DNA of 64,000 nucleotides from Anthoceros angustus (GCA_010909165.1 VJWM01000011.1:1488001-1552000); one strand, 5' to 3'; shown: positions 13,803 to 50,989, counted from the stretch's first letter. Notes: generated by a model from the sequence alone, not told the origin. Made by a program: numbers and translations.

Positions 13803-14049
13803 GACTGAAAACGCAAACGGGTGGGTATGAACCGAATCATCTGTACAAGTGTTATGTAGGCCACGCAAATTTTCCCAGCTGTTGTGTGGTGATTGTGAGA
13901 GTGAATTCCCGACATCCAGGTCTTTATCGATGCCCCTGTGCTGTTTCAGGATTGGAGTTGAAACCTCTGCATCCAATTGCAGAAGTAGAGACCCGTAACA
14001 GTCATGGTGCAGATCCTACGAACAGGTGGATCAAAACATAGTGTGACTG

Positions 14050-27255: not shown

Positions 27256-28320
27256 TCAGATCCTGACTGGAAAACTATACATCAGTTCGTCCATGTCTGT
27301 CCACCAGGTCTGACCTGATTGCTTCCAAGCACGGATTTCAATTTTGTGCCTGCTCCCACATCTGGGCATTGGTTTATGTCTTTGGCAACAAAAGATAGGC
27401 TGACGCATCAGAGTCTGCCAGATTGCGACATCAGTACAGACACTGACTGCAACCAAGCAAGTGCCTCATCCAGTCGGCCTGCACGGCCCAGGAGATCTAC
27501 CATGCACGTGTAGTGCTCCACTGTGGGGGTGATGCCGTAGTCTTTGATCATGACATGAAAGTATGTAGTGTCTCCCCTCGCTTACTAGCGCCGTATAACT
27601 GTCAGTACGTCTAGCAACGTGTTGCCATCTGGCTATTACCCATCATCTCCCATGCTGAGAAGCAAGGTACAAACATCTTCACTGACTCCTTTTCACCAAG
27701 TCCATGAAACACCCTCTAAGCTGCCTTTAGCATACTCTAAGCAGCCAGACTCGGCATACATGTTCCATACACAACTGCCTATAAAGACATCAGATCGATG
27801 TCCTAGTTTTCTAGTCTGCAAATGAAGCTGCTTCCCCTTCTCTAGAGCTGAGCGCTTCACATGTGCATATGCCTGCAGTAGGCAGACAAATGTCACCTAA
27901 TCCGGTTCTGCACTGCCATCTTCTTGCACAAAACTAAAGAGATAAAGCGATTTTCGGCCCATGCCCTGCTGGGAACACAGAGATATTATGATATTCCATG
28001 TCACCACATCTTTGTTTCCAAGTCTGTGAAGGATTCTTCAGTGTCATCCAAGTTGCCACACTTTGCATATCTGTTTACCAAACAGTTAGCGACGAGAAAA
28101 TCAGCTGTATGTCCTCCTTGTAAAATCTGTGTATGAAGCAGCTTCCCCTTATCCAATGCCGAGGCACCCACTCTTGCACACGCTTGCAGGAGGAACATAA
28201 ACGTCATGCAATTGGGTACCTTCTCCAAGGCTGGCCACACTTGCAATTGAAGCCTTGGAGAAGGGGGTTCAGCTGCAAGTGTGGCCACACTTGCACACGC
28301 TAGTAGGACGCGCACAAATG
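27256..28320 (-). pseudogene. Degenerate PLS/E+ PPR gene (WW-type)
   Basis: [46 protein letters not shown] and KQSGQTWWTDMDELMYSF. Confidence 0.8.
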
Positions 28321-28750
28321 TCCCACAGGTCTGGGCACCGCCATGCCATGAAAGGGACTGAGGTCAGCTCTGGTTCGATGACAGCCACCAGAATTAGCAG
28401 ATACTATCTCGTTGCGGTTAAGGATAGATTCAAAGCACAAAGATAACACATGGAGCGCCAGTCTGCCCGTAGCAGAAGAGAAGTGGAGCAGCGGCAGGCT
28501 ACCGATCAGAACGTGAAGCGGAAGCTACGAGTTGCGGCCGGGCAAGGGCATTCCGTAGGTAGACTGTCTAACAGATCAATCAGACATTTGAGTTTCTCGA
28601 ACTCTAAAAACAAGGACAACAGCACCAGGTCGCTTCTTGAGGCATGATGGTAAGCTTCGGCACCAACAGGCATTAAGCCAGGCACCCCACAATAAGAATA
28701 GACCCACTAGACTAATCCGAGTGCAAAGGTTCCGAAACCTTGACACGCTA

Positions 28751-29933
28751 CTACACAAAGAGATACTTCTGCAACTTCAGGGTTACATACACTAATCCCA
28801 ACAAGACAGGTACCTCAATCAACGGGCCAATGGTTGCAGCCAATGCCTCTTGAGAGTCTATGCCAAAACTGCCCACAGCCACGGCTATGGCAAGCTCGAA
28901 ATTGTTGCTGGATGCAGTGAACGACTGAGTAACAGCCTCTGCATAAGGGATGCCCAGACGACGACACAGCCACACAGATGAGAAGAAAACGATTGTGAAG
29001 TACAGAAGCATAGGGACCGCCACTCTTGCCACGTCCCCGATGTGGTCGACAATCTGATGAGCTTGGATGGAGAACATCACAAAATAGTGTACAGCAGGCC
29101 AATAAGAGCCCAGGGCGCTATGAAAGGTATGAACTTGGTGTCGTACCACTTTCTACCCACGGTGTAACGTAGGGAGTACCTTGTGATGAATCCAGCAGCC
29201 AGAGGAACTCCGAGAAAAAGCAGCACACTTCTGGCGATATCCCAGGCCCCTACATCAATGCCCTTGCCCCTGGAAACCACTTTAAGATAGAAGAGAGAAA
29301 GTGGAGTATACAACACCATCTGCATCACAGAATTGATGGCCACCAGTACTGCACACAGCTGTCCATCTCCCTTGGCCAGATCATTCCATATGAGCACCAT
29401 GGCGATGCATCTGGCAATGCCCACCAGAATAACCCCTGCCCTGTAGTGCTCAAGATCCGGAAGTGTAGCCCAAGCAAGGCCTGTCATGAGTGCAGGGCCC
29501 ACAAGCCAATTCAGAATGAGGCTCAACACCACATTTCGCGCCAGTCCTCCAGTCTTGATTGTTTTATAAAGAACTTCATACCGAACTTTGCAGAGAACTG
29601 GATACATCATGACCCACAGTCCTACGGCAATAGGCAGAGAAACAGATGCCAGTTTCACAACCTCCAGTCTCTTCTTGATTCCTTTCACATAGTAACCAAT
29701 AACGAGTGCCAATGCCATGTCCACAAGTATCCAGACGAACAGGTAGCGATCTAGCAAAGACAACTTCTTGAACAGGCCTACATCTGCGATAAGTATTCAT
29801 GCCGAGTAGGTCAGTCACACTCTAGGAACTCTTCAGAAGACAAAGAAAGCCAATCTTTCACGAACTGAAATGCTGTACCGGCGGAGTCGTCAGCTCCAGG
29901 CTTCATCACAGCCTCACACACAAGCTCCTCCAT
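28751..29933 (-). CDS. ACR3: ACR3 arsenite/antimonite efflux transporter, copy 1. Two exons (29933-29879 and 29783-28751); one 1-bp frameshift at ~29080, probably a sequencing error
   Basis: MEELVCEAVMKPGADDSA|DVGLFKKLSLLDRYLFVW...SLPIAVGLWVMMYPVLCKV...NWLVGP...GIARCIAMV...SNNFELAIAVA...GPLIEVP; 95-bp GT-AG intron at 29784-29878. Confidence 0.93.
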
Positions 29934-30560
29934 GTGGTAGCAATATTGACACACTCGTCTGCCGATCAAACGCCTGGCAACATGCACTTTAGAGTAATTA
30001 CCAAAACAGCAGAGACACTCTCAATTTCTCACAGCACAAACATGAAACTTGCCACCAGCAAGCCTTCACGAGAGGTGGAGCTCACTTCTCTGCTGGTGCA
30101 ACAATAAACCCCGGCGCAATTTTCGTCCGGCTGCGCAGCAACATCGGCTAATGCTGAACCATTTGCCACAAATCTGCAGCGCAAACCCCGTCCGCGCTCT
30201 GAATATTGAAGGAGGTCTGCTGCGCACCAACCGGGCGGCAAAGAACCTCCACTTCATCCCTTTCAAAGGGAACTTCCAGGGCCATGACTCGGCACCGGAA
30301 TGTCACCTAGCGCGCTCCTCACGCCAAGGACGAATGCCGTCTCCTGATGAAGCACCCCGACAGAGATGCAAATGGCGCCAGCCGCAAAATCGCCACAAGT
30401 GAGAAGCAAAATGCTCTCCACGCGAATACACAGCACTGCAGCCAAATCGGATCTGCTTTCGGGCTAACAAAACGATAGATGCACTGACTCCAAGGCCTTG
30501 ACAAACATGAAAGATGGTACACCACGAACACCAATGTGCTGCTTCCCTCGCCCGCTCATA
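29934..30560 (-). promoter_or_regulatory. ACR3 upstream region, duplicated at ~50230-50885
   Basis: Colinear similarity, e.g. ACAAATCTGCAGCGCAAACCCCGTCCGCGCT occurs in both copies; promoter function is inferred from position only. Confidence 0.45.
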
Positions 30561-31556
30561 CGATGCATTCCTGCAGAATACACTTCCCAGTTTGTGGCCG
30601 ACGGACAACCACCTGCCGTCAGCACAGATCATCAACTCGGTGGAGAGCAACAACGGGTTGAGCTTCCCACCGGCGTCACAGCCAGGGGCCAAGGCCAGCT
30701 CGGCAGCAACGATCTTGGGAGAGCCTGCTAAAGGCGGGCCGGACCCACATTATACTGTACACCGTGGCAGATCGAACACGAGAAGCCGGTTCCTGGGTAT
30801 ATCGGAAGCCGGGAGCCGGTAGCACCCTCTCTCTACAAGCATGAAACCCCGTACGGCCTCATTTCGGCTCATTTTTTTTGGGTCGCGCGGAGCGGCTGGC
30901 TCCGCAATGGGCGGTGTTTCCCCGCTTTTGTTTTGCATTTGAGTTTTGTATTTAGGGTTCTTAGTTAGGGTTTCTGGTATTTCTAATTATTTTTTCTTTT
31001 CTGCTGTTTCGTTAATCATTATTCAAGACTGTAATGTCCTAATTAGGTATATTTTTAATTAGTGACATTTTTTTCCCCAACAGTTTTCAGGGCTCTGACG
31101 TTGTTATGGTTTTTGACCGTTTTATGTTGCCCCTGTGCATTATTGCTCGATCAATTAGCTTGTTTTTGGTCGCATGGGTAATTTTCAGGTGGGCGGCATG
31201 TTCCCTCTTCTATTTCGCATTTTGTATTCAGTTGCTTTTTTCTAATAATTTTATGGATTTTAACACTGTTATGGCTTCTAACAATTTTATGTTTCTTATC
31301 AAAATTACTTTGTTTATCACCATATTTTAGTGATGTTGTATGTCACAGCAGTGACCAGGCAGCAGCAACACAAGCCCGGATATTAGACTCGCAACCCTAG
31401 CCTGAACAGGTATCGATATATTTGGCATATATTTCATTCATATAATTAAAAACTAGAACTGATACATGTAATTCAAGTAATTAGTTGAATAGCCTATGTA
31501 ACTTTCTTGACCTGCACCACCATAGATGTACAAGACTTGTTGTGAGGGTAATAGGA

Positions 31557-31660
31557 CAACCATTCTTGGAGGCTCAAGTTAGATATGAGGGTAACCATTC
31601 TTGGAGGCTCAAGTTAGATATGAGCATAACCATTCTTGGAGGCTCAAGTCAACTATGAGG
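31557..31660. repeat. Tandem repeat, ~35 bp x3
   Basis: AACCATTCTTGGAGGCTCAAGTTAGATATGAG unit. Confidence 0.85.
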
Positions 31661-32868
31661 GTAGCTATTTCAGCTCCTAACATTGTCGTTTGATGGTCGT
31701 CTAACATAATATGGTATTTTTTTATCATAGTTTTCCTTTTCCTACCGAAGTTTGGTTCTGTTGCTTTTTTATGGATTTTAACATTGTAATGAGGAAGAAG
31801 AAGAAGAATTTTATTTAAGTCCACTAAGGACGGATTTCCGTCACGGGACTGAAATATGACAACTACATCGATTGCGGTAAAATGGTGTGGACGAATGCAA
31901 AGGTAAAATTCAAACAACACAAATAATCTTCAATCAATCAATAGTGTCAATGAAAATGCATGAACGACGGCTAAACACCGCCAATTCTTCCCCATGAACG
32001 AGGGCTAAACACCACCAATTCTTTCCCATGAATGAAAGAAAGTCACTTTGACCTACAGCACGAGCAGCAATAAGGGGTATTTCTTGTCATCATGACTTTG
32101 TTCACTACCCATAGTTCATTCATATTCCTATATAATAGTCCGCTAATCATTTAATAGTATTTTACCATAATATTTTACATATTTATAGTAAATTAATCAT
32201 GTTGCAATATAATTGTCATTTGCTGTACTTCTCTTTGTAGTAAGACATGAACATCACCTCAAACTTACGGTCATTGTTTACAATATCCCTCCATGTCCTA
32301 CATCCTGTTCCATTTCAGCAATCTTGGCTGCCATCCCTAAATTCCATGTCTACAATATTATTATAAAATAGTAAAATAAAAATGAATAATAATTCAAATA
32401 AAATAATAATATATAAAGTATAAAATCAAACTTAAGTTAAACTTAATCAGAGCAATTGAGCGAGCGGAAGGACAAGTATAGCCGGGAGGGCGGGAGGACT
32501 TGGGCTGGGTTCGCATGAACCCGAACCCGACATGAAATACATGACGTGGAGAAAAGGACAAGATCAAGCCACACTAAATACAATAAAGTAACTGGTTCCG
32601 AGTCGAGATGTTTCCTGGGTCCGTTTTAAGATACCTGAGAAATCCTTCGGGTCAGATGAAACCGGGTTACCGGAACGGCAAAAAATCCCGTGCACGGCAT
32701 CTGTAAGAAATATCGGGTCGGGTCTTTATGGAACCTACATTGAACTCAAGAACCCCATTACTTCTAGTTTTCTAGGGTACAAGTGTGGCGTTTCGGAGTG
32801 CGCAGATGCTTGGCGGCGGTGCCGTTTTGTTGTGTTGTGCAACCTAGATCTCATACCCAGAACGAATC

Positions 32869-34262
32869 ATGTGGCCTCTATCTTTGCAGGCAGTACCAGG
32901 AGAATCGCAACGCTCTCCTCTAGTTGTCCATAGAGGAAATCATGACCTTGGTCTGCAACGGATGCCTAACACAACAGGTGCAAGTGTGAATAATCAGCAA
33001 AACATTCTTGCCACTCATTTTCAATGGCCGGATGCACAACCTACATGGCAAGTGGACTCCCCTTGGCCGGTGTCCCAAGTTCCTTGCAGTATCACTACTG
33101 CAAACGACTCTGTGCATGCAGAAGAAAACAGTGGCAAAAGGAAGAAAGGAGCAAGAAAGTTCGACAAGGCCACTGGCCCTCCTAAGGAGCCAGTGGCAAA
33201 CAAGAGATGGGAGGAAGCTGACCTTCTTACGTTGATTGCAGCAAGAAAAGAAGACATGGTCAAACATAGAGAAGGAGGTACCAAGGAGCGAATGATGACA
33301 GGTAAAGCTCGTTGGGCTGCAATATCAGTTGCATGTGCAGCTTTAGGGATCTTTAAGACTAACAAACAGTGTAAGAACCGCTGGCCAGAAGCTTTGATGA
33401 CAGACTTCAACAAGGTGCAAGACTGGGAGAGGCCTGGCAGTCATTCGGGAAGGTCAAGCTATTGGGCTATGGAGAAGGGGGAGCGAGAGGCACAGAAACT
33501 CCCCAAAGCTATGAGTAGAACACCTTTATGCTACTTGCTGCAACAAAGCGATGAATAGCAGGCTAATGCGGCGCAAACAAGGCAAGCGGATGCTAACAGT
33601 ACCAGCATGGGCGGCGGAGGAAGGCGACCTTCTTACGTTGATTGCAGCAAGAAAAGAAGACATGGTCAAACATAGAGAAGGAGGTACCAAGGAGCGAATG
33701 ATGAGAGGTGAAGCTGGGCTGCAATATCGATTGCATGTGTGCGACTTTAGGGATCTTCAAGACTAACAAGCGATTGAAGAACGCTGGCGAAGCTTTGATG
33801 AGACTTCAACAAGGTGCAAGGCTGGGAGAGGCTTGGCGGTCATTCGGGAAGGTCAAGCTATTGGGCTATGGAGAAGGCGAGAGGCGAAACTCCCCAAAGC
33901 TATGAGTAGAACATGCGATGCTATGCGACCTGGCGCAACAAAGCGATGACCGTGGATAGCGGCAACAAAACAAGGCAAGCGGATGCTAACGGTACCAGCA
34001 TGGGCGGCGGAGAGGAAGGCACCCCATGCAAGCAAACAAAGGAACTGGGAGTGGCAAGCGGAGGAAACTAAAAGCACAGAATGGAGTAAGCGGCCTTGTA
34101 CCTTTATTTGAGAAGAACCATGCAGAACAGATGGATTTACTAAGAGCTGATGAGGAGTCCAAACAGGCTAGGCATCAACAAATCTTAGAACTAGAGCGAG
34201 AGAAGATAGCAACGCATGTTGCTACAAAACAAAAAGATAGACTCAGATTGGCATGTTGTTAG
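32869..34262 (+). pseudogene. Harbinger Myb/SANT (trihelix-like) DNA-binding protein with an internal ~400-bp tandem duplication
   Basis: KRWEEADLLTLIAARK...RWAAIS...KTNKQCKNRW..LMTDFNKVQDWE...SYWAMEKGER...KLP; segment 33215-33615 is repeated at 33620-34010; C-terminal coiled coil. Confidence 0.8.
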
Positions 34263-34449
34263 CAATGAGCTTCGATAGATTCGGAATTTAGGAGCTTCTC
34301 TAATAGAAGCTGCCCAAATTAAAATGGCAATACAAAATAAGTGGATGTGTGGCTTCGCTCTTCTTCCTTCATGATTTGGAAGCTTTATTAAGTGCTCTTG
34401 TCCATACACATTCTGGCTGTAGTCTTCTTTGTATGTTTGTAATGTAGTC

Positions 34450-35745
34450 TTATTCTTCTTCGTCTGGGTCTATTGGATTATGTACCGTTCTTGGTACTTC
34501 ATTCTCAATGTCCTCTGTACGTAATAAACTTGGGTCCAATTCATCTCCTCGATCAATTCTAATATTGTGCAATATTGCACATGCATAAGAAACCTCAATG
34601 AAGTCGCTGATGTTCCCACGCCAAATTTTTCTTCCCAATATTCGCCATACTTTATCAATGCTCCAAAAGCAGTTTCAACAACCATTCTTGTGGATGAATG
34701 CTTGTAATTAAAGGACTCCATATTACGCAATAGACCTCTTCCTGGGAAAGGAATAATAAGCCAAGGTAATAAAGGATAACCTGCATCACCTATTATGTAT
34801 TCTCTTATGGCTTGTTCTTCAACCATGACAACCTCGCCATTTAGTCTTCTACCTGCATTTGCCAGATAATAAAATTCACTATTACATAAAATACGCATGT
34901 CATTAGCCCTGCCACCGTGACAATGTCCAAGAATTTCTCAGCCCTACAATTGCTTGCATTACCATAGTATAGTCTTTGTACCGTCCACGATATTCCCATG
35001 AGTTTTCGCCCATGGCAAGCTCCATCTTGAAGTGAGTTGCATCTACGGCCCCACAACAATTGATAAAACCTTGTTTATCCTTAAACCCATCCTTCACCGC
35101 TCTTAGTTCTTCTCCTTCAGGCCACCGTAGATGATGTGTAGCTCGTTGAATGAAGGCCACAATAAACCTACGAGTCACTTCACATGCGGTGCTTCAACCA
35201 ACACCAAACGTTTCACCAATTGACAAAAAAGAGTCACCTGTTGCAAGCCTTCTCAGAGCAATAACCACTTGTTTATGAACTGGGATATTTCTTACAGGCA
35301 CAATGTTAAAGCCTGGCACATTTATAAATTGCAAGTCTTGCCAAACTAAACTACAAATATATTCAAAAGTTGAACATGAGAATCTCAAGAAGCTAGAAAA
35401 TCTCCGCCATCTTCCCTTGCCACCATGCTATATAAAGGCCACATATCGTGATACGAGGTTTGATGTAATACATACCCTTTGTACTCCATGAAAGAGCCCT
35501 CTTGGCAACTTTTTTGGGTCATCCAGCATCCCAAGTATAGCAATTAACTCATCACATGCACAAACAAGGTCTTCCATCGCATCTTCAAAAGACAATTCTT
35601 CTCCTTGGAATAATGAGGCTTGCATGATGTTAGCATTGTTAGAATAAAAAATATCCAATTGCTCCATAAACTTAAACACATTTTCCATACATTCAATAAA
35701 GAATGAATGATTTATTGAGGTGAAAGAACGATGGAAAGAGACCAT
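34450..35745 (-). pseudogene. PIF/Harbinger transposase (DDE_Tnp_4), frameshifted
   Basis: IALRRLATGDSFLSIGETFGVG, GAVDATH, IIGDAGYPLLPWL, FNYKHSSTRMVVETAFG and ACAILHN. Confidence 0.9.
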
Positions 35746-35749
35746 CTAG

Positions 35750-37770
35750 GAGGGGACAACAAATGGGGACCCGGGGGTCGGAGTGAAGAGGAGCAACTGA
35801 GCTCCCTACCTAAAGTGACCAATCGCACCCACAATGTCATATGCGTAGAATAAACGGCCCGCAAACCACGGAGGAAGAGGAAAAGGCATCACCCACCGCC
35901 GCCGCCTTTATGGAGAATCGCCGCTGAGAGCGCCTGCTGAAGAGCAATAGAAACCCGCCAAGTATGCCGTGAAGTACGAGAGGGACAAGACTATGCTCGC
36001 CAAGATGGTAAGCTTTGGCACAAGACTTGATGAATTTGTCAAAGTCCTCACCATTGCCCCATACGCTTTAGAGCAAGCGGATAAAGAGGTGGCCCGCTTG
36101 CATCCCGCTATACTTGCGGACCTTGAGAGTCACGACGCAGCACCACCGGGCTGGTGATGACTGGCGGAGGTGGCGCCACGCAGGTCAAGAACCACTACAT
36201 CCGCCACCACAACCGGTCGCCACGGACAAGGTATAAGTCCGCCCGATTGAACGACCAGAAGAAGAGTATACTCCCGCCTCCGTGCCATATAGCCACTTTC
36301 GCGAGCAATGGCAAACATGACGCCACGGATGGCGCCGTGAGTGGCAATGCGGCGACTCTGGGGACAACGAGCAAGGTGGACACCAGAGACGTCAAGAGCA
36401 GAGCCGCACTCACAAGTGAGGAGCGAAGAAGCCACAGGCTGGAGTAGGCCGAGACGGAATCGCATCGCAGTAGTGAAGGTGGTTGGTGCGATGTGAAATC
36501 CCCGTATGCATGGGCGGGCCAGTAGCCAAGCACCTGCTCCCTTCCCAGAACAAGAGCGGAGCCGCGCTCTAGTGGACCTGGAGATGGAGGGGTCCTGGAG
36601 GACAGACTGAAAAGCCTGGCCGAGCTGCTTCTCGAGCAGAGATGCCTGCAATCCCCTAAAGCCATCAGTGATAAATGTAGAGAAAGGAGGGAAGTCCTTC
36701 CGAGCATCTGCTGATAACATGTCTCTGGCCTGTCTCAAGGACGATTGGAGAGAGAAGGTTCCCTCCTCCACACTTGATACGAGATCCTCGAGAAAGGGCT
36801 TGTCATGGAGGATGAAAATTTCGATCTATGATGTGCTTGTGACCATTATTGGATGTGATCCCCTTCAATTTGGCATTGCCACTCCGGGGGGCTGCGAGTC
36901 TGTGGTGCTAGGGGTGAAAGCTTTCCTTGATGCCCACCCGGAGTGGGTAGTCTTACAGGTGGATGTCGAGAACGCCTTCAATACCATTTCCCGGAGCGTC
37001 ATCTTTGAGGAGCTTAGGGATGTCAAGGCCCTGGGAGTCTTATACCTTTGTCCGGTGCTTCTACGGAGGTCCTCCAACTCTACTACCAAAGACAAGAACG
37101 TCTCTTCAGTTTCACTGCTCCGCCTTGAATCGCCATGTGTACCGTGTAAGGCGATCCGCTAGGCGGTGCTCTTTGCTATTGCTCACTATAGGCCTCGCCT
37201 AGGGCCGCCTCCGCTGCGGATCGTGTCTCCTTCACGGGCACGATTCTCACATCCTCGGCCTGGGACAAAGTCAAGGAGGCCTTTGAGATATTCTCTTCGA
37301 GCTACAGGGCTTGAAGGTCAAGATGTCCAAGTGCAGCGTCGGTCCCGTCGGGGATCCCGCCATTCTCAGCTTCGCCGGGAGATTGCTCCGCCTTGGTCTC
37401 ATGGATTCTTGGGGTCCCCTTGGTTCCTGACTTCATTGGGAGCTTCTGGACAAGGCCCTTGCAGGACCTCCCATATTGAGGACCTCCTTTGCCGGAGGAT
37501 GCCTGTGTGGCCTTTGGAATCCTTTCCTTCTGTTTGCTAGGCGCCTGGTACCTCATCCAGACGCCGCCTCCATCTCCGGTCCTTTGTCCTGCCCGGGTTT
37601 GATACTAAGATTATGGATACTCTTGGGGACATCCTGGCCTGGGGGCTTTTGAGTGCCTGGGACGACTGCCCGCTGGCAAGCATCCCTGCCTGTGCAATTT
37701 GGAGGCGTAGGACTGCTCTCATCGGAGGTCTCTTCCCCGGCGGCTTTCTTGGGGAGTTGGGCCCTCTCTA
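35750..37770 (-). mobile_element. 5'-truncated, 5'-inverted non-LTR retrotransposon with a restriction-like endonuclease (CRE/NeSL-like)
   Basis: Minus strand 35750-36840: GAGAWL, RFRLG, CECG...HLARC, THGAIR, RADL, VADV (CCHC plus REL). Plus strand 36840-37770: RT PLQFGIATPGGCE...QVDVENAFNTISR...GDPL...AAFLGSWA. Confidence 0.85.
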
Positions 37771-38479
37771 CTTGACGTAACCATAATTATAATTATTATA
37801 ATAATAGAAACCAAACCACCTCAAGTTCTTGGCACCATCTACAAAGCGCCGCTCCCCTACAGAACTTGAACTCCCAAGCGCTGCTCCCAACAGAACTTGA
37901 ACCCCTATCCTTGCAAAAGCCCAAATGCGCCCTGCAGGTCGTGGAGTTACTTAAAGTAGGTAGGGTCCGTGGAGCTTCAACGGACAATCAAAACAACCGT
38001 ATCTCAACCGTTACATGAGGTAAAAGTGAGGAAATCCGGGTTGTAGTTCGTGGCACATGCAAACGCGAACGCCGCAACTCCGCTCAGATTAGGCTCGGGT
38101 TCGGGTTCATGCAACCCACCCTTGGGGTATAGAAGAAAGCATGAGCCGTGTCGAGAGAAGGTACACCGGAGGACCCGGTTCACATCCGCCACGGCAATTG
38201 AGTAATGATTGTTAGGGTCCGGCCCGCCCATGTAGACGGGGGCGGATGTCGATCCGAGATGCGCTTGGAGGTCCATGTTGGGATGGGAGATGAGATACCT
38301 AGTCTACTTTATTTGTGCATTTCAAGACCAGGGGCTATTTGGGACAACAATGGCAAGTCGCAATAAGTTTATCCAAGGTTGGAAGTGGCACCAAACCAAC
38401 CAACCATATGAACTCGGAGTTTGATTTCTTCTCAAACCAAAATTTCATAGCCGAGGAGTTATTGTTACCAGGCCCAGAT

Positions 38480-39030
38480 CCTGGAGCGGCAGATTCATCC
38501 GCATCTAGGAGACCTCGATTCATCTGCATCCGGGACTAGCAGGTGGCCCTTGAAGGACGACGAGGGCAGATTCTTCAACCTACGAGTCTCATTGAATGGT
38601 TTTTTATGATGAATTTGCCTGAGGGGCCAACTTTACCACCACCATGACTTGATTGAAATCCTCAGATTGCAATGGCCCCGTATGACAATCAATTCCCCAT
38701 CAACCAAGGAGCTTCGAGGAAAAATTGCATCGGCTATGAATGCCGTGCATTGCCGTGATGGAGGAGCGGAAGGTTCATCTCGCATCCGGACTAGGTGGCC
38801 CTTGAAGGACAAGATTCTTCAACCCACGAGTCTCATTGAATGGTTTTTATGACAGAATTTGCCTGAGGGGCCAACTTTACCACCATCGATGACTTGATTG
38901 AAATCCTGTGATTGCAATGGCCCGTATGACAATCAATTCTATCAACCAAGGAGCTTGAGGAAAAATTGCATCCGGCTATGAATGCCAGCATTGCCGTGGA
39001 TGGAGGAGCCAAGGTTCATCTCGCATCCGG
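38480..39030. repeat. Tandem duplication of ~270-280 bp
   Basis: GGTGGCCCTTGAAGGAC...CAATGGCCCCGTATGACAATCAATTC...GAAAAATTGCATC occurs twice. Confidence 0.8.
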
Positions 39031-39388
39031 ACAAAGACATGTTGGTGCTTCAAGGGTCATTGACTTGGTATGCGTGCGTTGCAAGCATCAATCGTGAAGC
39101 ATCTTGCCCGCCACGCCTCGATTGCGCGATCTGGCGAAAGTCTCTTCCGTCCAGAACCGCTGCGCCCAGCTCAAGAATATCCGGATTACTGTACAGCTTC
39201 GATAGATAGGGAGCACGTCTATGCGCGGATGGGACCCAGCAGCTAGCTGCGTGTTTGGCTTTGAATTCGAGGAGACTGGAGGAAGCTCCAGTGGATGAGG
39301 TGCAAGCTTGGTGACTTGCATTCGAGAACTGAATGTGGCGTCTGGCTCGGTTGTTGGATTGTGAGAGGCAAGGGGGACTGCATGCTAG

Positions 39389-42300
39389 TGTTAGAAAACA
39401 GTTATTCCCAGATTCAGTACATTTAAAATGGTGTGCTATGCATACATATATAGCCTTTGGCCTTGTCATACTCTCGATAGTATGAAACCCTATCTCGCTC
39501 CTGGGATAGTCCTATATACTTCTAGGACTTATACTCATAACTCTAATATATGATGTGTTGCACCAATTCTATAGATTTCTAACACTCCCACTCAACACAT
39601 CAGTGCTACTCTTTTAAGCCTAACATCTTGCTAAACTTAACGTGCTTCTCTAAAGTCAACCCTTTGGTCAAAACATCTGCAGGCATGTCCACAGTGGGAC
39701 AATACGCTAGTTCTATCTCCTTGGATTGAACTTTCACCCTGATGAAGTGATGCTTTACTTCAATGTGTTTTGTCCTCGCGTGAAAAGTAGCATTCTTCGC
39801 TAAGTAAATGCAACCCTGATTGTCGTTGAAGATGGTTGTTGCACCCTTCTGCTTAAATCCCATTTCTTCGAGCAATCATCGTAGCTATATTGCTTCCATT
39901 GTTGCAGCAGATATTGCCATGTACTCCGCTCAGAGAGGACAAAGCCACGATGAGGTGGCCTACTACTCCATGAAATGGCTCCCCCAAATAGCATAAACAC
40001 ATATCTTGTGGTAGACTTGCGGCCATCGACATCTCCACTTAATCAATCACAAAATCCAACCACAGGTCTTCATGTCAATCCTTTTGGTATTTCAACTTCC
40101 AATGTTTTGTGCCGCGCAAGTATCTGAATATCCGCTTGACTGCTTGATAATGCTGTTGTCCAGGGTTGGCCAAGAATCGACTCACAACTCCCACTGCCTC
40201 TGCAATGTCGGGCCTTGTCCCTGTTGCCAAATATGTAAGACAGCCAACGGCACACTTTGATCCTATGCTCTTCCTTCCGTGAGGTAGAGGAGTGATTGCC
40301 CAAGTTTTGTTCTTGAGAAGAGAGTTATACTCACTGTCCACGGCTTCTTTCCACTCCTTTGCCTTTGGTCCTTCCAATGCTTCCCTTCGGCTTTGTGGTT
40401 CGCCGACATCTACCAACCATGCCTTCTCATATGCACATGCATTCATGGATTCCAAGATCTTCTGTGAAGGTTTCCATTGTCTTGTTGATCTTCTCAAGAT
40501 TGTTGTCTCTCTCGAATACTTCGAGCTTCCTCTTCTTCGTCAATTACGATAATGCGTTGATCTTCATCTACTTCTCCAACCGCGACATCGGGAATTTCCC
40601 TTTCTCCCCTCTCTATGTCGCATTGTTGAGAAGGTGCGTTGGACTCTCCTTGGGGTTAGGAAATGAGCTGGGTTTGTTTTTTTTCGTAGGTATGGAGTGG
40701 AAAATAAGGCGGAAAGGGAGGAAGAAGCACGGACGGTACTCCGGACTACACTCCGGACTCCGGGATAGGTAACGGACCCTGGAGTCCACTCCAAAGGACC
40801 TTCGGACCACGCACCGGAGTATCGGGATAAGTCCGGACCCCACTCCGGGTCAAACAGGATAAGTACGCCAAGGAAAGTAACTTAGAAGTTGGAGCGTGAG
40901 TTAGACAGGGCGGCGCCACGTGGGCAGTCTTGAGAGGTGAACGGCATGCAGCCAGACCGTAGGGTTGCTGCCAAGGGGAGAGGTATTCATCCACAACAGA
41001 AGGCTAGAGCAGCACGCGCGCGTAAGGCAGGTAAGCCAGGCGAGAGTAAGCCATGCTGCTCACGCGACAAGCGGCCACCCCTCCGCGCGCAGTTACTCGA
41101 CGGCGAGAGGCAAGGCGAGGTCATTCTTCCAAGCAACCGCGATCCTCGCATTCTCGCCGTGACACCGGCCCTCTGGCGTTGTCTTTTTATCGCCAGCACC
41201 CTTCGGCCGCCTCGACTTCGCGAGGGAAGCAACCGACGCTGCGGGCCAAGGGACGACGACATGAGCCTCACACTCCAACAGTAGCGAAGGAGCGGGAAGA
41301 TGGGACCCAAGAAGGCGCGGAGGTGTGAGCCATGGCGCTGGTGGAGCGCAACATCGCCACTGTGCGCTACCCGGACTTCGGGCCGTGGCCGGAGGAGGCG
41401 GGGAGCCGTCGAGGAGCACTCGGACTACACTCGGACCTTCGGCAAGATCGCCTAGTCCGGAGTACGCCAAGGAGCGGGAAGATGTTGGCAGCGCCAACAA
41501 GGAGGTTCGCTCTAAGAGCCTCGCGAGAGGACCCTAGGAGGTGGACCGTGGAGGTCCCGAGGGCGGTTACAACCGCCCAATGGAGGAAATTGGAGGCCGA
41601 GCCTCAAGGCAAGAGGGAAGATAGAGGCGGCAAAGGCCGCAATGTCAAGCTGTGAACGCAACAACCAATCACCGTTGATGTCGGATTTGGTCGGACAGAG
41701 GGTGAGAGCAAAGTGGATCATCGCCCATCGAACATGCTCACCAAGGTAGATCACCTTGGTGACACCGGTGTTCCCGCATGCGCCGCAGAGGAAGGAGGGC
41801 GATCGGGAAGGATCATCTTCGCCAGATCAATCGAGAAGCTCAAGCCGAGGTGTGAGAAGCCTCCTCCATCGGCGTTATCGCTGCTTTTAATTCATGCGGG
41901 GGGCACGCGAACCTCCCGAAGGAGGGTGAAGAGGAACGCGACTCGGAAAGGGCTGGGCCGCCCACCGGGAGGCGATGGAAGGGCGCAGAGGCGGAGGCCT
42001 GGCCCACCGAGCAAGAGGGTCCGGAGGAAGACGACTGAGGGAATCCTGCACCCATACGGCCCGAGCGACTCCACCAAGGGAAGTGTGGGAGGACATCCTG
42101 CCTCCTCCCGTGCTCCCACCGAGCCGCAAGGGGAGGCGGCCCGACCGGGAGTTGGTGGCTCCAGCTCACGACCAGACCAACGTTGGCGATACTGGCCGAG
42201 CCCCGACGGACTACTGGAGTCAAGAGGCGGAAGACGGTGCCACTCCACAACACCGCACCTGGACGAGCTCCGTGTTTCCGCCCCGCCAACGGAGTGGCAA

Positions 42301-45300
42301 GAAGCCGAGGAGGCGGAGAGGGCTAAAGGACGCCGCCAAGGAGGCGGAGGCCACCGCGCAGCCCCACCGAGCCGTCCTGCCTCCGACCGGGAGAGGCAAA
42401 GGGCCCTCAACCCCTCACCCTCCGAGCCCTGTGGAGAAAGAGGGCGACAAGGAATTGGCGGCCAAGAGGGCCAAAGAAGGTGAGGCTCCGGACCTCGATC
42501 AGGACCTAAGGGTCCCGATTAGGTTCTGAGAGCCCACCGACTCACCCGGACCGCGTATGGAGGTCCTTGGCGGAGAGATGCCCGCCTGACGGACTTCTTG
42601 GGGCCTCACGCGGCAATGGAAGAGACACGCGGTCCGGCTACCGCCATGGACTAGATGCCTGGGACTCTACGAGACGGCCGAGAAGATCCAGGAGGTGGAG
42701 GCAACAAGGAGGCGCATGGTGCTCCTCCGTGAGCTGGAGGCGCCCAGAGGCAAGGAAGGCGGAAGCCCTCGCCGCATCGAGGAAGGGAACGCGGAGGCGG
42801 AGCGCGAGGTCCGAGTGATTCAGAAGACGGACCAAGGTCCTCCAGTGAGCAAATGAGGCAAAGCAGGAGGCCCAAGCACTCCAAGATCTCGCAGCAAGGG
42901 GAGGCGCAGCAGGAGGCGGAGAGGGCTAGACTGTCGAGCGCCCCGCCAAGGAGGCGCAGCAGGAGGCGGAGAGGCAAGGCGGAGGCGGAGGCGGCCCACG
43001 GGATCGACGTGATCGAACCGTGGAGGGAGACGGGGGCTAACCCTCAAGGCCGACAAGTGCACGGAGGCACCTACGAGCCGTGAGGAGGAGTTGGAGGTCG
43101 CACCGGAAATAGGGGACCCTGTGCAGCAGAGGTAGAAGGCGGAGGCGGAGGCGGAGGAGGCAAGGAAGAAGGATACCTTGGAGTCGCAACTCCAAGACGC
43201 CTTGAGTGCCAGGGGTTCTCAACGAGAGAATCCAAGACTTCGAAAGGAGATAGAGCGCCCGCCTTCGCTTGAAGACGGAGGAGAACAGGCTACCAAGGAG
43301 TTCGACGCCGCGAGGCCGCAGCAGGAGAGGTGGAGGAAGCCGAGTCGGACGGGATACCGCCCGCTGGAGAAGGAAGTGGCGGACCTCGGGAAAGGTTGAA
43401 CGGAGGAAGAAAGCGCTGGAGGAGGCAGCTGCCGTCCGGCCATGGGAAGCGAGGGGAGCTACCCATGGCCGCAAAGAATCATGAGCTAGAACACGAAGGG
43501 AGGAGGAGGAGGCGAGCAGCCAAGGCCGCAGGAGGTGATTTGAGCCGCCTTGACGCATCAAGAGAGTCCGCCTACCGGGCCTTGGTCGCACGGAGACGGA
43601 CCGGGTGACAACATGCCCACCGAGCACCTCTGGAGGAGGGAGTACCGGGTGCCCGGCCCATGTGGAGGAGGCACCCAACAAGTCGACCCCGACTTTGCCT
43701 ACTACCACGCAGAAGCCCTCAAGGCTCGGAGGTCTTGCGCCACGCAGTGAGGCGGACTTGTAAGGGCTCAAGGAGGAGCGAGGGAGGAAGGACCCGGGAC
43801 AGCCACGGGACCCTAGGAGCCACCTACTGGCAGCAGCGGCGAGGGAGAGCTGGAGGAGGCGAGGAGGAAGGGTCACCACGGGAGGTAAGCACTCGCACTC
43901 CGCACGAGGAAGGAGGAGGTCCGGGAGGCCGTGGAAGGCGAACCGGGATCCGGAACCAAGGGAGGGCTCATGAGCCCGATAAGCGAGGAGGCAAACCAGA
44001 GCTGTGAGTCCGGACTTTGTCCGACTCGAAGAAAGGCCAACTCAAAGTCCGCCCTCAAGGAAGACCGGACTTAGAGGTCCGGACTCGAGGAAGGGTCGGA
44101 AGGAGGAGGTCCGGACTCGAGGAAGGGTTGGGTCCGTAAGATCGGACCCCGAGGTCCGACTTAGAGGTCCGGACTCGAAGAAGGACTACCCAGAGGTCCG
44201 GACTGAGGCGAGGCCGACCACGGACTCGAGGAAGGGTCGGAAGGAGGAGCCCCGCCGACTTACGCAGGGAGAACACCACTGGCCCCAGAGGGACATGGGG
44301 AGAGGAAGACGTGGTGACCGCGCCACGACGCCGCCAGAGCCCAACCCGGTGGATTCCGGAAGGGGAAGGGTCTACCGCTGGATCATCCGATTGCGCGCCG
44401 TGCCGCCGAGGATTGGGCCACCCGAGACGGGACCAACGGCATTCCCACACCACCGACGTAGATAGGAGGAATAAAGAATGGTAGTGATTAGGGCGCCGGT
44501 ACTCATCGAGGAGGGATGTAATAAAGGCACGACTTCGAGTATAAGAGGGCCGAGGCCGCCTGGTAAATCATCTTTTCTTGGTGTTGATGCGTCTTCTTGC
44601 GGTGCCTTGTGCCTTCTTGTTAACGCGAGTCCCAGTCACCGAGCAGTCAAAGCACCGGAGGCTGATCAAGGTCTTGGTGACTGACCCTAACGTGTGGTGG
44701 TGTGTGTGTGAACAGCGCTTAGGGACCCTTGCTGCCCGTGACAGGCCGCCCGCCGCTGGACGGACCGAACGTGTGACGGACGACCCCGAGAGGGCGGGCG
44801 GAGCACGAGAGGCTCGCAAAGCGGCGGAGGAGGTCCGGACTGCGCAGCCACCCGCGATTCTTCCCAAGGACGATGAGGGTGGTGTGAATGGTGAGAGGGA
44901 CGGACTAGATGGATGAGTGACGAACTGGAACGACACGGACGCGAACGGGCCCTTAAACGTTTGGCCGCACCGGGCCTGTCGGTGAACGTTGCGGTAGCTA
45001 GGCGCAAAACGATAAATAGGTGTGTTGAGACTGAACGGATACTAAGTAAGGTGAGAAACGATTGAAACGTAGCAAACGGAGCCTGTTATTCTCTTGGGAG
45101 CGGACCCCTTACTACAACGACACGGGATTGTGCGCGCCCGGCTGGCCATCAGCGAAAGTCTCGCCACAGTTGGGCTCAGGAACAGGTTGCTCAAGAGTGT
45201 CATCATCCTCAGAATCCTCATCAGGGTTGTCAACATACGCCGTCGGATCCTTCGTGATAACTATTGGGGTTGGAGCTCCCACTCCTTTGCTAGGTTCCAC

Positions 45301-47708
45301 AACCTCATTAAATACAACGTCCCTGCTAAAAATGATTTGCTTCCTTGAAAGATCATACAACCGGTAGCCCTTAATCTCAGTAGAGTATCCAAGCATAAGG
45401 CACTTCACGCCTTTTGGATCCCATTTTGTTCGGGTTTGCTTGAACGTGAGCATAAACCATCGAACCAAAGATCCTCAAATGGCTTGTCGGGCTTGACGCT
45501 GCACCACGCTTCCTCGGGGTCATTCCAACAATAGCTTTGGTTGGAACTCGATTCAAAACATAGGTTGTAATAACAGCCTCACCCCAAAACGCATTTCCAA
45601 GCCACTATGATGTAACATGCATTTAGCTGCCTCCACGGACTCTAAGTTTGCGCCCGCCACTCCATTTTGCTCCGGTGTGTGAGGGATGGTTAGTTGCCTT
45701 CCAATTCCATGCTCCTTGCAAAAGCGCCAGTTAGTGGAGATGTATTCACCTCCGTTGTCACTACGCAAAGTCTTCTTGACGTTGTCCACTTCATGCTCTC
45801 CACCATGGCTTTCCATTCCTTGAAGAGTGTAAATACAGGATTTCTCCTTCATAAGATATGTCCAGTCTTCCTAGTGAAATCATCCACAAACACCGAATGT
45901 AGCGGGCTCCGCCATGAGTGGGATTTTCATTGGACCACACACATCCGTGTGTACCAACTCTAGCGCCATCTTTGCTCTGGCAATCTTTGGGAACTTAGTT
46001 CGTGTAGCTTTCCCATTATGCACCCTTGGCATAATTGCGGCTCACCCACTTCTTTCAAATCCAAGCTCAACCATATGTTGGTTCTTCATCAACTGATATT
46101 GTCCACACCAATGTGCCCTAGACGTTGATGCCATAAATCAATAGATCCAATGCTATTTTGCGAATCGTCCATAAAGGTGCAAGCTTGCCTTCCACAAGCA
46201 CAACTTGTACAAATTTCCTATTCGGACGCCTAGCAATCACTTTAGCATTCGATAACTCAGTTTGATTGATCCAAACTTTGAATTGAACACAACCTCATGA
46301 CTGCATCGCAATTTTTATGGAAAGAAGATTCCTCGCAAGATGAGGCACATGATGCACGTCTTAATTCAGAGATCGCTCCTCCGGAAGATGGACTCAGAAC
46401 ACTCTTCCCCTTGATGTCATGTGACCTATTGTCACCAAGCGCCACCGTATGCCCCTCCGCAATACCTCGTAGCTTGAGAACCAAGGAAGGTTATATAAAT
46501 GTTGGGATGCACCGTAGTCAAGGTACAAACTCTCATCCTTCTTTGATGAAGTCGCTTGATCTCTTGAAGCACGCCAAGATGTGTTCTTGGTCCTTCTCAC
46601 GACTTGATTAGCTTGGGATGATTTCCTTCTTCAAGTCTCCAATCTTATTTTACACCTTTGCGTGATTGGGCTTCGCAGAATAACAAAAGCCTTTCACCTT
46701 TCTCTTGCATCTCCTCCTTGTCCCTTCTAGAGACTTGGCTTGCAGGTCTTCCACCGTGATGTGCCCTTCTTGGAGAAGAGTGCCAAGCGCTTGCCTTGTG
46801 TCCGGAAAGAACCATCAAGCTCCTCTTGTAGGAGTAATCTAACCACCTCATCAAAGGTTGGTTGATTGTCACTTGGGCGCATCGCTACGGATGCCCTATA
46901 AGACAATAAAAATTGCCTACATGATGGTGGCAAACTACTCGGCGATGATCACCTTACCCGAAGGTTTGATCTGCCTCCCTCATTTGATCAACCAAGCTTT
47001 TCAACTTGTTGACATGTTGTTGAACGTCGCCTCACCATCTTGAAGTTGGAGAATTGACTTTCCAGGACATTTCGCTCACAATGCTCTTCTTCTCATCGTT
47101 GTGCAAAGAATTTTCCATGCATCCCGAAGAGACACACTCGCTCAATTGTGAGAGAATGTCATCCCACATTCAGATAATATTAGCCAAGGCTTTATCCTTG
47201 TCTATATCCTTTTCGGCGCCAGTCCATTTTCCAAACTTCCACAATCCTCACAATGAGAAGAGATTTTAGCTTCAACTTCCATAATGTGAAGTTCACGCCA
47301 TCAAACTTCTCCCCACCACGTAGTCTCCATATGCACACCGAAAGCTATGCAAAGACAAGACAAAAGTTCCTCGCACCAAAACTACTACCAAGCTTCAAAT
47401 TGCAAGCGAGCTTTCCACGGACAGTCGCATAACTACAAACAATGCAATAGAAGACAAGTGGCAAGAGTCTGCGGTGGTGCAGTACTTTCGCATCTCACGA
47501 ACCATGCTCGATACCATGTTAGAAAGCAGTTATTCCAGGTTCGACATTAGAAATGGTGTGCTATGCATACATATATAGCCTTTGGCCTTGTCATACTCTC
47601 GATAGTATGAAACCCTATCTCACTCTGGGATAGTTCTATATACTTCTAGGACTTATACTCATAACTCTAATATGTGATGTGTTTCACCAATTCTATAGAT
47701 TTCTAACA
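39389..47708 (-). mobile_element. Ty1/Copia LTR retrotransposon (element B), RT largely deleted, carrying a nested 4.4-kb insertion
   Basis: LTRs at 39389-39584 and 47517-47708 (TGTTAGAAA...TTTCTAACA), TSD GCTAG, PBS TGGTATCGAGC, PPT GAGTGGGAG. Integrase LRSDNGGEY and TPEQNGVA; RNase H DNQGCI...RTKHIEVKHHFIR. RT jumps from KSIGSKC to AVGCLTYL. Confidence 0.93.
40655..45092 (+). mobile_element. Unclassified GC-rich insertion inside Copia B
   Basis: Copia linker sequence resumes across a duplicated CTTGGG (40649-40654 and 45093-45098). The insert has GTCCGGAC-rich repeat arrays (40735-40850, 44025-44260) and a frameshifted coiled-coil-rich ORF region. Confidence 0.65.
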
Positions 47709-47715
47709 GCTAGCA

Positions 47716-47821
47716 TGGTGCACTGCAAATGGACTGGCTCCTCCGAGGCTCGGTGCACTGCACATGGACTGGCTCCTTCGAGGCTCGGTGCACTGCACAT
47801 GGACTGGCTCCTCCGAGGCTC
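47716..47821. repeat. Tandem repeat, 35 bp x3
   Basis: GGTGCACTGCACATGGACTGGCTCCTCCGAGGCTC unit. Confidence 0.9.
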
Positions 47822-48340
47822 AAATTGCATGTATCTACCAACTCCGGAGATCACACGCCTGGAACGGGTACTGGCTTGAGCTTGTGAGAAGTATTCACCG
47901 TACGTGGTGCTTAACTGGGGAGCTTGGAGATGTTGGAAAAGGAGCGCAACAATGTCGCAGCGCTGTCTCTCATACCATCTTAGCAAAGCGCGCATTTGAT
48001 AGAAAATAGAGGTATGGGTCGTAACCTTGGCTTTGGTGCTGCGTTGAGAAGGAATTGACGAGGTGCTTGTGCCGTGCTCATTTTGATACACGGAGGCCGC
48101 GATAGAGATCTTGCCAGGCGGGTGATGAAACAAATTTTAAGCATCCAACACAAGCATAACAGTTTTCGAGTCGTTGATTGCAACGAGCGAGAAATGCAAC
48201 CAGCGAGAAATGCACCAAGCCTCCCTATCACACACACACAACTACCATAATTAAACAAAAGTCGACTGATAGACTGTCGTCGGAAGCACCTTGCCCTTGC
48301 TTGCCTGTAAGGTAGAGGGAGCAGATCTGCAAAGTGGCTG

Positions 48341-48821
48341 TCACACAGATGCGGTTGTTGCGGCTGCGGCTGGCTCAGGAGGTGGGGGATGGATCAATTC
48401 TTCCTCTTGGCCCTGGTCTTGGGATTTGGCATACCCTTGCTCTTGCACAAGCAGCTGGATGCGGCGCTTGATGTCATCCCTAATGAGGCGGACGGTTTCC
48501 ACGCTCTGGCCCTTGGGATCCTGCAGCTGCCAGTCTACCCGCTGCAGCCCGGGCACGTATGGGCAAGCTTCCCCGCATCCCATGGTGACCAGCAGCTTGC
48601 TCTTCTCCGCAACCTCCTTGGTGAGCAGCTGCGGCTTCTTGTCCGACAGATCGATCCCGACCTCCTTCATGGCCTCCAGGACCTCCGGTGCACGCGGCTG
48701 CCGGGCACACTCCCGCCGACACGGCGTACGCCAGCTTGGGATCCGCCAGAGTCGAACCAGGCTGCCGCCATCTGCGACCGCCCGCATTGTGCACGCACGC
48801 GAACAGGATACAGTCTGCCAT
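48341..48821 (-). CDS. arsC: Bacterial-type arsenate reductase ArsC (LMW-PTP fold), intronless, ~161 aa after restoring 5 deleted bases
   Basis: Reconstructed MADCILFACVHNAGRSQMAAAWFDSLADPKLAYAVSAGVCPAARVHPEVLEAMKEVGIDLSDKKPQLLT...LLVTMGCGEACPYVPGLQRVDWQLQDPKGQSVETVRLIRDDIKRRI, with the CX5R P-loop, CX3C resolving cysteines and the DP motif. Confidence 0.88.
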
Positions 48822-49149
48822 GCCTCAATCTTGCGCTGCCTTCCTCACCCTAGAAGCATGCTTCTTGCCAGGATAAGTAGCCGCAGTCGGCCCGGCCGTG
48901 GAACCGTGGAATGCGGAAGGTGGCTCTCCGATTCTAGAATATCCGGGTTGGCCCTTGAGATGTGAGCTCCTGCGAAAAGCGCCTTCCAGACACACAGGAC
49001 GATAAGCAAAAAAGAGAGGAAACAGCAATACCGGTAGTATCACCTGGCTTTTAGACTTCCTGCTGTTTTTCTTCAGCAATCAGAACGCGGAGCGAACACG
49101 GGGTAGATAGCTTGAATTTGATACCTTTCATTCTTTCGCACACGCTGTG

Positions 49150-50230
49150 TCACAAAGAGATGCTTCAGCAACTTCTATGTCACATCCACTAATCCCAAGA
49201 AGACAGGTACCTCAATCAACGAGCCAATGGTCGCAGCCAATGCCCCTTTAGACTCTATGCCAAAACTGCCCACGACCACGGCTATGGCTGGCAAGCAGCA
49301 AGCCTGAAATTGTTGCCGGATGAGTAACAGCTTCTGCAAGGGATGCCCAGACGTCGACACAGCCACACAGATGAGAAGAAAACGATTGTGAAGTACAGCA
49401 GCATAGGGACCGCCACTCTTGCCACGTCCCCAATGTGGTCGACAATCTGATGAGCTTGGATGGAGAACTTCCCCAAAATTGTGTAGTAAGCCAATGAGAG
49501 CGCAAGGCGATAGGAAAGAATGAACTTGGTATCGTACCACTTTCTTCTCATGGTGTAACGTAGGGAGTGCCTTGTGATGATTCCAGCAGCCAGAGGAACT
49601 CCAGGAAAACGCAGCACACTTCTGGCAATAGCCCAGGCCCCCACATAAATGCCCTTGCCACTGGAAACCACTTTAAGGTAGAAGAGAGGAAGCGGAGTAT
49701 AAAACAACACCTGCATCACCAGTATTGCACACAGCTGTCCATGTCCCTTGGCCAGATTATTCCATATGAGCACCATGGCGATGCATCTGGCAGTGTCCAC
49801 CAGAAGAACCCCTGCTCTGCTCAAGATCCGGGATGAGGCTCAACACAACCTGAGCAAGGCCTCCAGCCTTGACCATCTTGTAAAGAGCTTTCTTACCGAA
49901 CTTTGAACAGAACTGGATACATCATGACCCACAGTCCTACGGCAATAGGCGAGATACAGATGCCAGTTTCACAACCTCCAGTTTCTTCTTGATTCCTTTC
50001 ACGTAGTAACCAATAACCAGTGCACATGCCTTGTCCAAAAATAGCCAGACGAACAGCTTCTTGAACAGGCCTACAGCTGTGAAACAATATTCATGCCGAG
50101 GAAGTCAGTCACTCTCTAACACCTCTTCAGAAGACAAACAAATCCAATCTTCCACAAACTAAAGTGCTGTACCTGCGGAATCATCAACTATACTCTTTTT
50201 TACAGCCTCGCACACAGGCTCCCCTCCATG
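49150..50230 (-). pseudogene. ACR3: ACR3 copy 2, degenerate
   Basis: Colinear with copy 1, including the intron. It has internal deletions (e.g. loss of NWLVGPALMTGLAWATLP), frameshifts, a premature TAG near the end and many substitutions. Confidence 0.85.
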
Positions 50231-50989
50231 TGGTACCAATATTGACACACTCGTCAGCCGATCAAACCTGGCACAACATACACTGAAAGTAATTATCAAA
50301 GGACTTCATCTCTCACAGCAATAGACACCACCTGACAAGACATCGATGAGAGGCCAAGTTCACTGGTGCAACAATAAAATGCTGATTGAGTCTTCGTCAG
50401 GCTGAGGAGCAGCAACAGTCGAACCACGCTACAAATCTGCAGCGCAAACCCCGTCCGCGCTATGAAAATCGAAGGAGGTCCGCTGCGCACCAACCGCGGC
50501 AAAGAACCTCCGCTTCGTCCTTTCAAGCGGAGTTTCCCGGGCCATGACTCGGCAACGGAATGTTGGCAGCGAGCCTCAGGAGTCCGTCACTGCGCCAGGG
50601 CCTGCACAGTGCACACATGGTCCGCAAGACACAAGTCCGAGACAAGTCAGAAACACAGACACGAGCAAATTTGAAGGCCATCACCTCATGCACCGAGATG
50701 CAAATTCCGCCAGCTGCAGCATCATCAAAAGTGAGGAAGAAAATGCACTCCATGACTTCATGGCACTGCAGGAAAATCGGATTTGCTGTGGAGCTAATCA
50801 AAACGACCGCTGCACTGACTACAGAGCCTTGACGAACAAGTAGCTCACAACGCGCACCAATTTTCAGCTTCCCTCTCGTGCTCCAATTTTGCGGTTGTTA
50901 GAAATGATTTAGTGCAATATATCAAAATGTGTTAGACTGATAGATGGCTGCCTCCAAAGCCACCTAAGGAGATTCGAATATGCAGGTTA

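Follow-up and report, generated by a model that had tools for sequence, protein, structure and literature searches.

Does a land plant keep, side by side in its nuclear genome, a bacterial-type arsenate reductase gene (arsC) and the gene of the arsenite exporter ACR3, and could such a pair still work? The question is raised by a stretch of 64,000 nucleotides of Anthoceros angustus (GCA_010909165.1, VJWM01000011.1:1488001-1552000), called here the window, whose minus strand carries two ACR3-like genes and one arsC-like gene in nuclear sequence of the bryophyte land-plant type. A first-pass annotation of this DNA had described an operon-like ACR3-arsC-ACR3 cluster of three co-oriented minus-strand genes, with arsC about 330 bp downstream of ACR3 copy 2. 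Both copies and arsC were indeed all found on this strand at the places expected, and the distance from the stop codon of copy 2 to the ATG of arsC is about 320 bp. We consider it likely that the locus is a genuine plant arsC-ACR3 neighbourhood, in which arsC is transcribed, the interruptions of the reading frames are errors of the assembly, the pairing is old in green plants and copy 2 is dead. It is a eukaryotic gene neighbourhood, not an operon.

A first question is whether arsC encodes a complete protein. Searches were run with single exons or pieces; for the joined copy 1 and the read-corrected arsC, the work was confined to translation and alignment by script. In tblastn, bacterial ArsC proteins align with arsC as assembled in the frame order -3, -2, -3, -2, -1 within the first 135 nt. 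Contigs of four sequencing runs were aligned to positions 48000-51000 of the window: X1 (DNA-like, the run in which copy 1 is best represented), X2 (RNA-like, from the same sample as X1) and two runs of a related organism B. An X2 contig of 821 nt (depth 91.6) spans 48292-49098 and shows, relative to the window, one substitution (48996) and six insertions. Two of the insertions lie upstream of the open reading frame (CT after 48923 and GCAAGTT after 48965); the other four are internal to arsC (G after 48686, C after 48711, GC after 48750 and C after 48780, in plus-strand positions) and fall exactly on the four breaks predicted from the frame-hopping tblastn. With the X2 letters applied, arsC reads as an uninterrupted ArsC of 161 amino acids (486 letters). 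In the assembled sequence, with its four breaks, arsC is thus not intact, and the frame is restored by the letters of the X2 contig.

The six indels are all letters missing from the window, against a single substitution, and they therefore indicate consensus error rather than decay. All seven breaks of the locus, four in arsC and three in copy 1, correspond to letters missing at short runs or repeats. The frame breaks of arsC are most likely assembly errors of a deletion-type consensus, and those of copy 1 are probably of the same kind, by extension from arsC. Frame breaks in this assembly cannot be taken as pseudogenisation. As for the 5’ untranslated region of arsC, the CT that the window lacks at 48923 is present in X2 and the GCAAGTT that it lacks at 48965 is present in both X1 and X2; a loss of seven letters exceeds the usual homopolymer error.

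The extent of the X2 contigs gives the limits of the arsC message. Within 48000-51000 they cover 48152-49098 only, apart from two low-depth pieces in copy 2, and the interval 49111-49817, which separates arsC from the body of copy 2, has no X2 contig. This pattern is that of RNA, and of a monocistronic message. This message is single, about 950 nt long and collinear with the genome, which bears out the earlier description of arsC as intronless. Its transcription, which had been left as a point to be checked, is shown by the X2 contigs. The operon-like arrangement is on the contrary not retained: the arsC message is monocistronic and the adjoining upstream ACR3 copy is a silent pseudogene.

This upstream copy is a duplicate of copy 1, 28743-30557 matching 49140-50883 with 77–84% nucleotide identity in a self-comparison of the window. 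The duplication reaches only as far as the ACR3 stop codon, so that arsC lies outside it. Relative to copy 1, copy 2 has lost stretches of 21, 54+5 and 15 nt and shows 289 substitutions as well as numerous indels of 1–3 nt. The differences between the two copies are spread almost evenly over the three codon positions (0.108, 0.082 and 0.160), against 0.144, 0.050 and 0.476 between copy 1 and a related transcript. The X2 pieces found in copy 2 are short (30–60 nt) and belong to one partly fitting contig. Copy 2 is a decayed, essentially silent pseudogene. Within it, X1 contigs supply 5 missing letters at 49817 and another 2 at 49849, so part of its load of small indels is assembly error. The lengths of the large deletions (21, 54 and 15 nt) are each divisible by three; that these deletions too could be artefacts was considered and rejected.

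Copy 1 is probably the working exporter gene. Its main exon matches the Pfam family SBF (PF01758; 165 bits, 1.5e-48), and this long exon is 88–89% identical to P0121/P0122, two plant ACR3 proteins taken from assemblies of public runs, 66–68% identical to the ACR3 of ferns and lycophytes and 68% identical to that of Pteris vittata. By tblastn, P0121/P0122 align with exon 3 at 83–90% identity in two frames abutting at 29083. Sampled words of copy 1 are present at 87% in X1 and 68% in X2, and at 23–24% in the runs of organism B. Exons 1 and 2 carry the motifs LCRP, LRCRF, YCC and LVCEA (ELVCEA in exon 2), whose cysteines align with those of liverwort and moss ACR3. The transporter body carries the Cys of the ARCIAMV helix and the Glu of the PLIEVP helix, two residues whose roles come from work on the bacterial and yeast Acr3.

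The frame of copy 1 is interrupted at about 30192 (a G run, exon 1), 29934 (GGAGGAG, exon 2) and 29090 (a T run that reads 4 letters where 5 are needed, exon 3). When unknown letters (N) are placed at these three low-complexity sites, script translation gives 443 codons with no stop. The first-pass annotation described copy 1 as near-intact; the assembled gene has three breaks, not one. Only one ACR3 copy of this locus, namely copy 1, can probably work, and its predicted intactness hangs on the three frame corrections.

What kind of protein does arsC encode? Its in-frame C-terminal piece matches the Pfam family LMWPc (PF01451) with 27.0 bits for a cut-off of 23.2, and the C-terminal two thirds match thousands of proteins named arsenate reductase, at 60–73% identity. 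In the corrected ArsC the P-loop CVHNAGRS, split by a frame break in the raw assembly, occupies residues 9–16 (Cys9-X5-Arg15). Cys84 and Cys88 stand in GCGEACP, aligned with GCGDVCP of the structure 3T38; their spacing differs from that of pI258 (Cys82/Cys89). Asp103 lies in a QDPKG motif, and a role is predicted for it by likeness to ArsCs of the low-molecular-weight protein tyrosine phosphatase (LMW-PTP) type. The top PDB matches of the window piece are all arsenate reductases, the best being 3T38, which we take to be ArsC1’ of Corynebacterium glutamicum, a thioredoxin-coupled enzyme with three cysteines. The downstream cysteines are missing from 3RH0, an enzyme of the mycothiol type.

3T38 shares with the plant protein the P-loop CVHNAGRSQ, the TMGCG..CP motif and the two downstream cysteines, with moderate identity over the compared part, and it is also the best PDB match of the ArsC found in the liverwort Calypogeia (see below). 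It differs by a chain of 213 residues with an N-terminal extension, the match starting at residue 82. The plant protein has no such extension and ends in a tail of about 25 residues rich in Q, E, P and A, which the bacterial matches lack. That nothing precedes the P-loop suggests a cytosolic enzyme. ArsC belongs to the Cys-X5-Arg, three-cysteine type and is probably thioredoxin-coupled, both its activity and its redox partner being predicted from the residues described above.

We then examined the surroundings of ACR3 in liverworts, the moss Ceratodon, Klebsormidium (two loci), Coccomyxa viridis and Raphidocelis. In the leafy liverwort Calypogeia fissa (L007) an intact, intronless arsC of the same subtype, coding for 140 amino acids, lies 1.5 kb upstream of ACR3 and head-to-head with it. 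In Riccia sorocarpa (L001) a remnant of arsC, with an internal deletion and its 3’ half lost, lies 2.2 kb upstream of a tandem ACR3 array. In the chlorophyte Coccomyxa viridis (CAUYUE010000017.1, L010:9007-9693, minus strand) an arsC with three exons is found 0.3 kb upstream of ACR3, also head-to-head; it has an intact P-loop and GCG/EACP motif and is absent from the called genes. Synteny in three other species is thus directly observed. The contigs of the closest ACR3 proteins (L003–L005), all of them short, show no arsC.

The recurrence of the linkage in two liverworts and a green alga argues for a functional pairing, and reduction followed by export is the most likely function, as far as sequence allows one to judge. 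The reduce-and-export module of the first-pass annotation is therefore kept in part: the linkage recurs, but elsewhere the two genes are head-to-head and not co-oriented. Such a head-to-head pair, with a gap of 0.3–2 kb, is unusual among eukaryotes in having stayed together over very deep divergences. The spacing invites the idea of a shared arsenic-responsive promoter, by which arsC and ACR3 might be co-regulated.

Two of the loci deserve a separate mention. On CM100799.1 of Riccia sorocarpa the arsC remnant is at L001:7573-7784 and three ACR3 genes lie within 12 kb (L001:10001-21657), i.e. arsC has decayed beside an exporter that was kept and amplified. In Raphidocelis subcapitata (BDRX01000163.1, L002:1-14346) ACR3 adjoins a GAPDH gene, a PGK gene and an MFS transporter gene. 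These neighbours are parts of the published ArsJ-type algal arsenic neighbourhood, and the exporter genes of both published arsenic routes are thereby found in one locus.

The origin of arsC was approached with a tree of 120 sequences, including 117 bacterial relatives, in which the Coccomyxa ArsC was represented by its exon 1 only. The three plant and algal ArsCs do not group, and nothing in this tree is supported. Constraining the three to one clade is not rejected (p-AU 0.8) and gives a score above that of the quick free search; this is no proof of a single origin of arsC. The nearest named bacterial relatives, at 47–69% identity, belong to Acidobacteria, Myxococcota, Planctomycetes and Gammaproteobacteria, and acr3 is present within 4 kb of arsC in two of the 13 nearest bacterial loci. 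It is possible, though we hold it only tentatively and would not bet on it, that the head-to-head pair is one ancient green-plant module, acquired once from bacteria before the split of chlorophytes and streptophytes, transmitted vertically into bryophytes and lost in several land-plant lineages. Other reductases, such as HAC1, are known in the land-plant lineages where arsC would have been lost. If this scenario is true, an LMW-PTP-type ArsC was the ancestral arsenate reductase of land plants.

An arsC without introns, whose nearest database relatives are bacterial (60–73% identity), could also be expected from bacterial contamination or from a chimeric join, a possibility that the first-pass annotation had named as fatal to the cluster. 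Against it, a contig of 1291 nt from an independent run (X1) runs through arsC and the spacer into the 3’ end of copy 2. Moreover arsC is flanked by plant transposons, its product ends in a low-complexity tail of eukaryotic style that is absent from the bacterial matches, and a liverwort has the same subtype next to ACR3, as does an alga, there with introns. On these four grounds contamination was rejected; we regard it as extremely improbable.

Other results weigh against an intact, old arsC-ACR3 neighbourhood. As assembled, arsC is frame-broken in four places, its first 45 codons being distributed over three frames, and copy 1 is frame-broken in three. The read comparison covered 48000-51000 only, so that the corrections of copy 1 rest on extension from arsC. 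The RNA label of X2 is a guess. The only X1 contig over arsC (48097-49384) belongs to a second variant, which departs from the window by 18 substitutions and 41 gap letters over 1291 nt, and not to the corrected window copy; the intact arsC transcripts could stem from a near-identical paralogue. In the related organism B (run X5) no contig covers arsC at 90% likeness. The cut-offs of the NCBIfam models TIGR02691, NF010053 and TIGR02689 (157–215 bits) are not reached by the arsC piece, which scores 46–52 bits; its close bacterial relatives score 60–84 bits on the same models, and ArsC is therefore placed in a sister subgroup, outside the pI258 and Synechocystis equivalogs. Lastly, no arsC was found within 10 kb of ACR3 in Marchantia paleacea, Ceratodon, the two Klebsormidium loci or Raphidocelis, so that the linkage expected across relatives holds for Calypogeia, Coccomyxa viridis and, as a remnant, Riccia, but not for these others. 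As to organism B, the DNA contigs of run X5 on 48000-51000 amount to three short pieces of copy 2, and its arsC is either more diverged or absent.

Part of these results would fit a dying cluster, in which arsC and copy 1 are truly frameshifted and the intact transcripts come from another near-identical paralogue. The seven frame breaks of the assembly go in this direction, as does the presence of two arsC variants in the reads while none of the aligned DNA contigs has the corrected window sequence. The second variant appears in X2 as well, as a minor form at 48211-48321 (depth 31.5 vs 84.6); being present in both X1 and X2, it indicates that there are two arsC paralogues, both represented in the RNA-like run. 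But of the 18 sites that distinguish the other variant, the X2 contig agrees with the window at 17, and X2 is identical to the window over 48152-48321. The X2 contig therefore belongs to the window copy and not to the other variant. Six missing-letter indels with one substitution are moreover the mark of consensus error, whereas true decay, as in copy 2, has left 289 substitutions together with indels. We thus consider a dying cluster unlikely. Less probable again is an assembly duplication, i.e. a single true locus entered twice in the assembly, one of the entries with more errors: the two variants differ by substitutions, and both occur in short-read-derived contigs and both in X2.

With an intact arsC and a working copy 1, arsenate detoxification could proceed as follows. 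Arsenate would enter the cell via phosphate transporters; ArsC would reduce it to arsenite through a disulfide relay from Cys9 to Cys84 and then Cys88, and would be recycled by thioredoxin; ACR3 would export the arsenite. The gene order was probably head-to-head ancestrally, as seen in the chlorophyte and the liverworts, then rearranged to the co-oriented state and subsequently duplicated in the lineage of the window.

The logic of reduction followed by efflux, and the homology of the proteins, are shared with the bacterial ars operons (arsR-acr3/arsB-arsC). The present locus differs from them by the absence of a polycistronic message, by an ACR3 that has introns and a plant-specific sensor domain, and in that no ArsR was seen. 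HAC1/ATQ1 and ACR2, which are of the rhodanese/Cdc25 type, are likewise presumed to convert As(V) to As(III) in the cytosol before efflux or sequestration, but are unrelated to ArsC in fold and origin.

A closer parallel exists in algae. ACR3(ArsB)-ArsH-ArsC neighbourhoods have been reported in Chromochloris, Coccomyxa subellipsoidea and the streptophyte alga Klebsormidium, with algal ArsCs that look nearer to various bacteria than to one another (Foflonker and Blaby-Haas, Mol Biol Evol 2021; PMC7826186). These neighbourhoods, which include recent duplications of the cluster, resemble our locus as a nuclear, eukaryotic pairing of an ACR3-type exporter with a bacterial-type ArsC. Our locus differs by its land-plant host, its co-oriented genes, one dead ACR3 and the stretching of the whole by transposons. 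No ArsH turned up here, although no search was aimed at it.

For ACR3 itself, the N-terminal domain of MpACR3 of Marchantia is where As(III) binds, and it governs the transporter's trafficking to the plasma membrane (10.1101/2025.04.13.648538). Copy 1 resembles MpACR3 by an N-terminal extension encoded on two small exons, with cysteines aligned with those of liverwort and moss ACR3. This domain is shorter in copy 1, the first transmembrane segment being near residue 110, compared with a domain of 123 residues in MpACR3.

A review of 2022 states that eukaryotes are without homologues of the prokaryotic arsenate reductases (PMC9454679), and in reviews plants are still said to depend on HAC1/ACR2-type enzymes. 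Our literature search found no paper on ArsC in a hornwort, a bryophyte or any land plant, and recent papers on ACR3 of Marchantia and other plants leave ArsC unmentioned. The novelty of the cluster is less than the first-pass annotation assumed, in view of the algal neighbourhoods already published. With a transcribed ArsC beside ACR3 here, and an intact ArsC in a leafy liverwort, the neighbourhood published for algae is now seen in land plants as well, and ArsC becomes a candidate enzyme for the opening step of arsenate detoxification in bryophytes.

Table 1. Positions of the arsenic genes, transcript-like contigs and transposons in the window.
Feature	Position	Strand	Basis and remarks
ACR3 copy 1	28751-30285	-	main exon 29783-28754 and two small 5’ exons
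ACR3 copy 1, exon 1	30086-30285	-	start ATG 30285-30283; Cys-rich N-terminus; tblastn of liverwort/moss N-termini P0244, P0253
ACR3 copy 1, exon 2	29879-29973	-	last part of the Cys-rich N-terminal domain; tblastn with residues 16-32 of P0122; GT/AG borders
ACR3 copy 1, exon 3	28751-29783	-	transporter body; stop 28751-28753; Pfam SBF
Harbinger-type transposon remains	32848-35745	Myb_DNA-bind_4 on +, DDE_Tnp_4 on -	Pfam matches
Copia-type long terminal repeat (LTR) retrotransposon, GC-rich inner segment	39419-47708	-	LTR pair; SH3_retrovirus and rve matches
arsC coding region	48341-48821	-	ATG 48821, stop 48341-48343; LMW-PTP-type arsenate reductase
arsC transcript-like contigs, run X2	48152-49098	-	collinear with the genome, intron-free, sharp edges
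ACR3 copy 2, pseudogene	49140-50883	-	self-comparison, tblastn, read contigs

The gap between copy 1 and arsC, of about 18 kb, is mostly made of transposons (Table 1). That transposons account for most of this spacing, as first proposed, is reasonable in view of the Harbinger-type pieces and of the Copia LTR pair, whose members (39419-39584 and 47544-47708) are direct repeats of 96% identity, 8.1 kb apart.

Outside the cluster, segments of pentatricopeptide-repeat genes occur at 11844-14211 on the plus strand and at 27271-28349 on the minus strand; the two are related (67–88% identity) and on opposite strands, and the second is directly downstream of ACR3 copy 1. On the other side, between 51500 and 61500, open frames resemble by eye retrotransposon fragments, with zinc-knuckle-like and chromodomain-like motifs.

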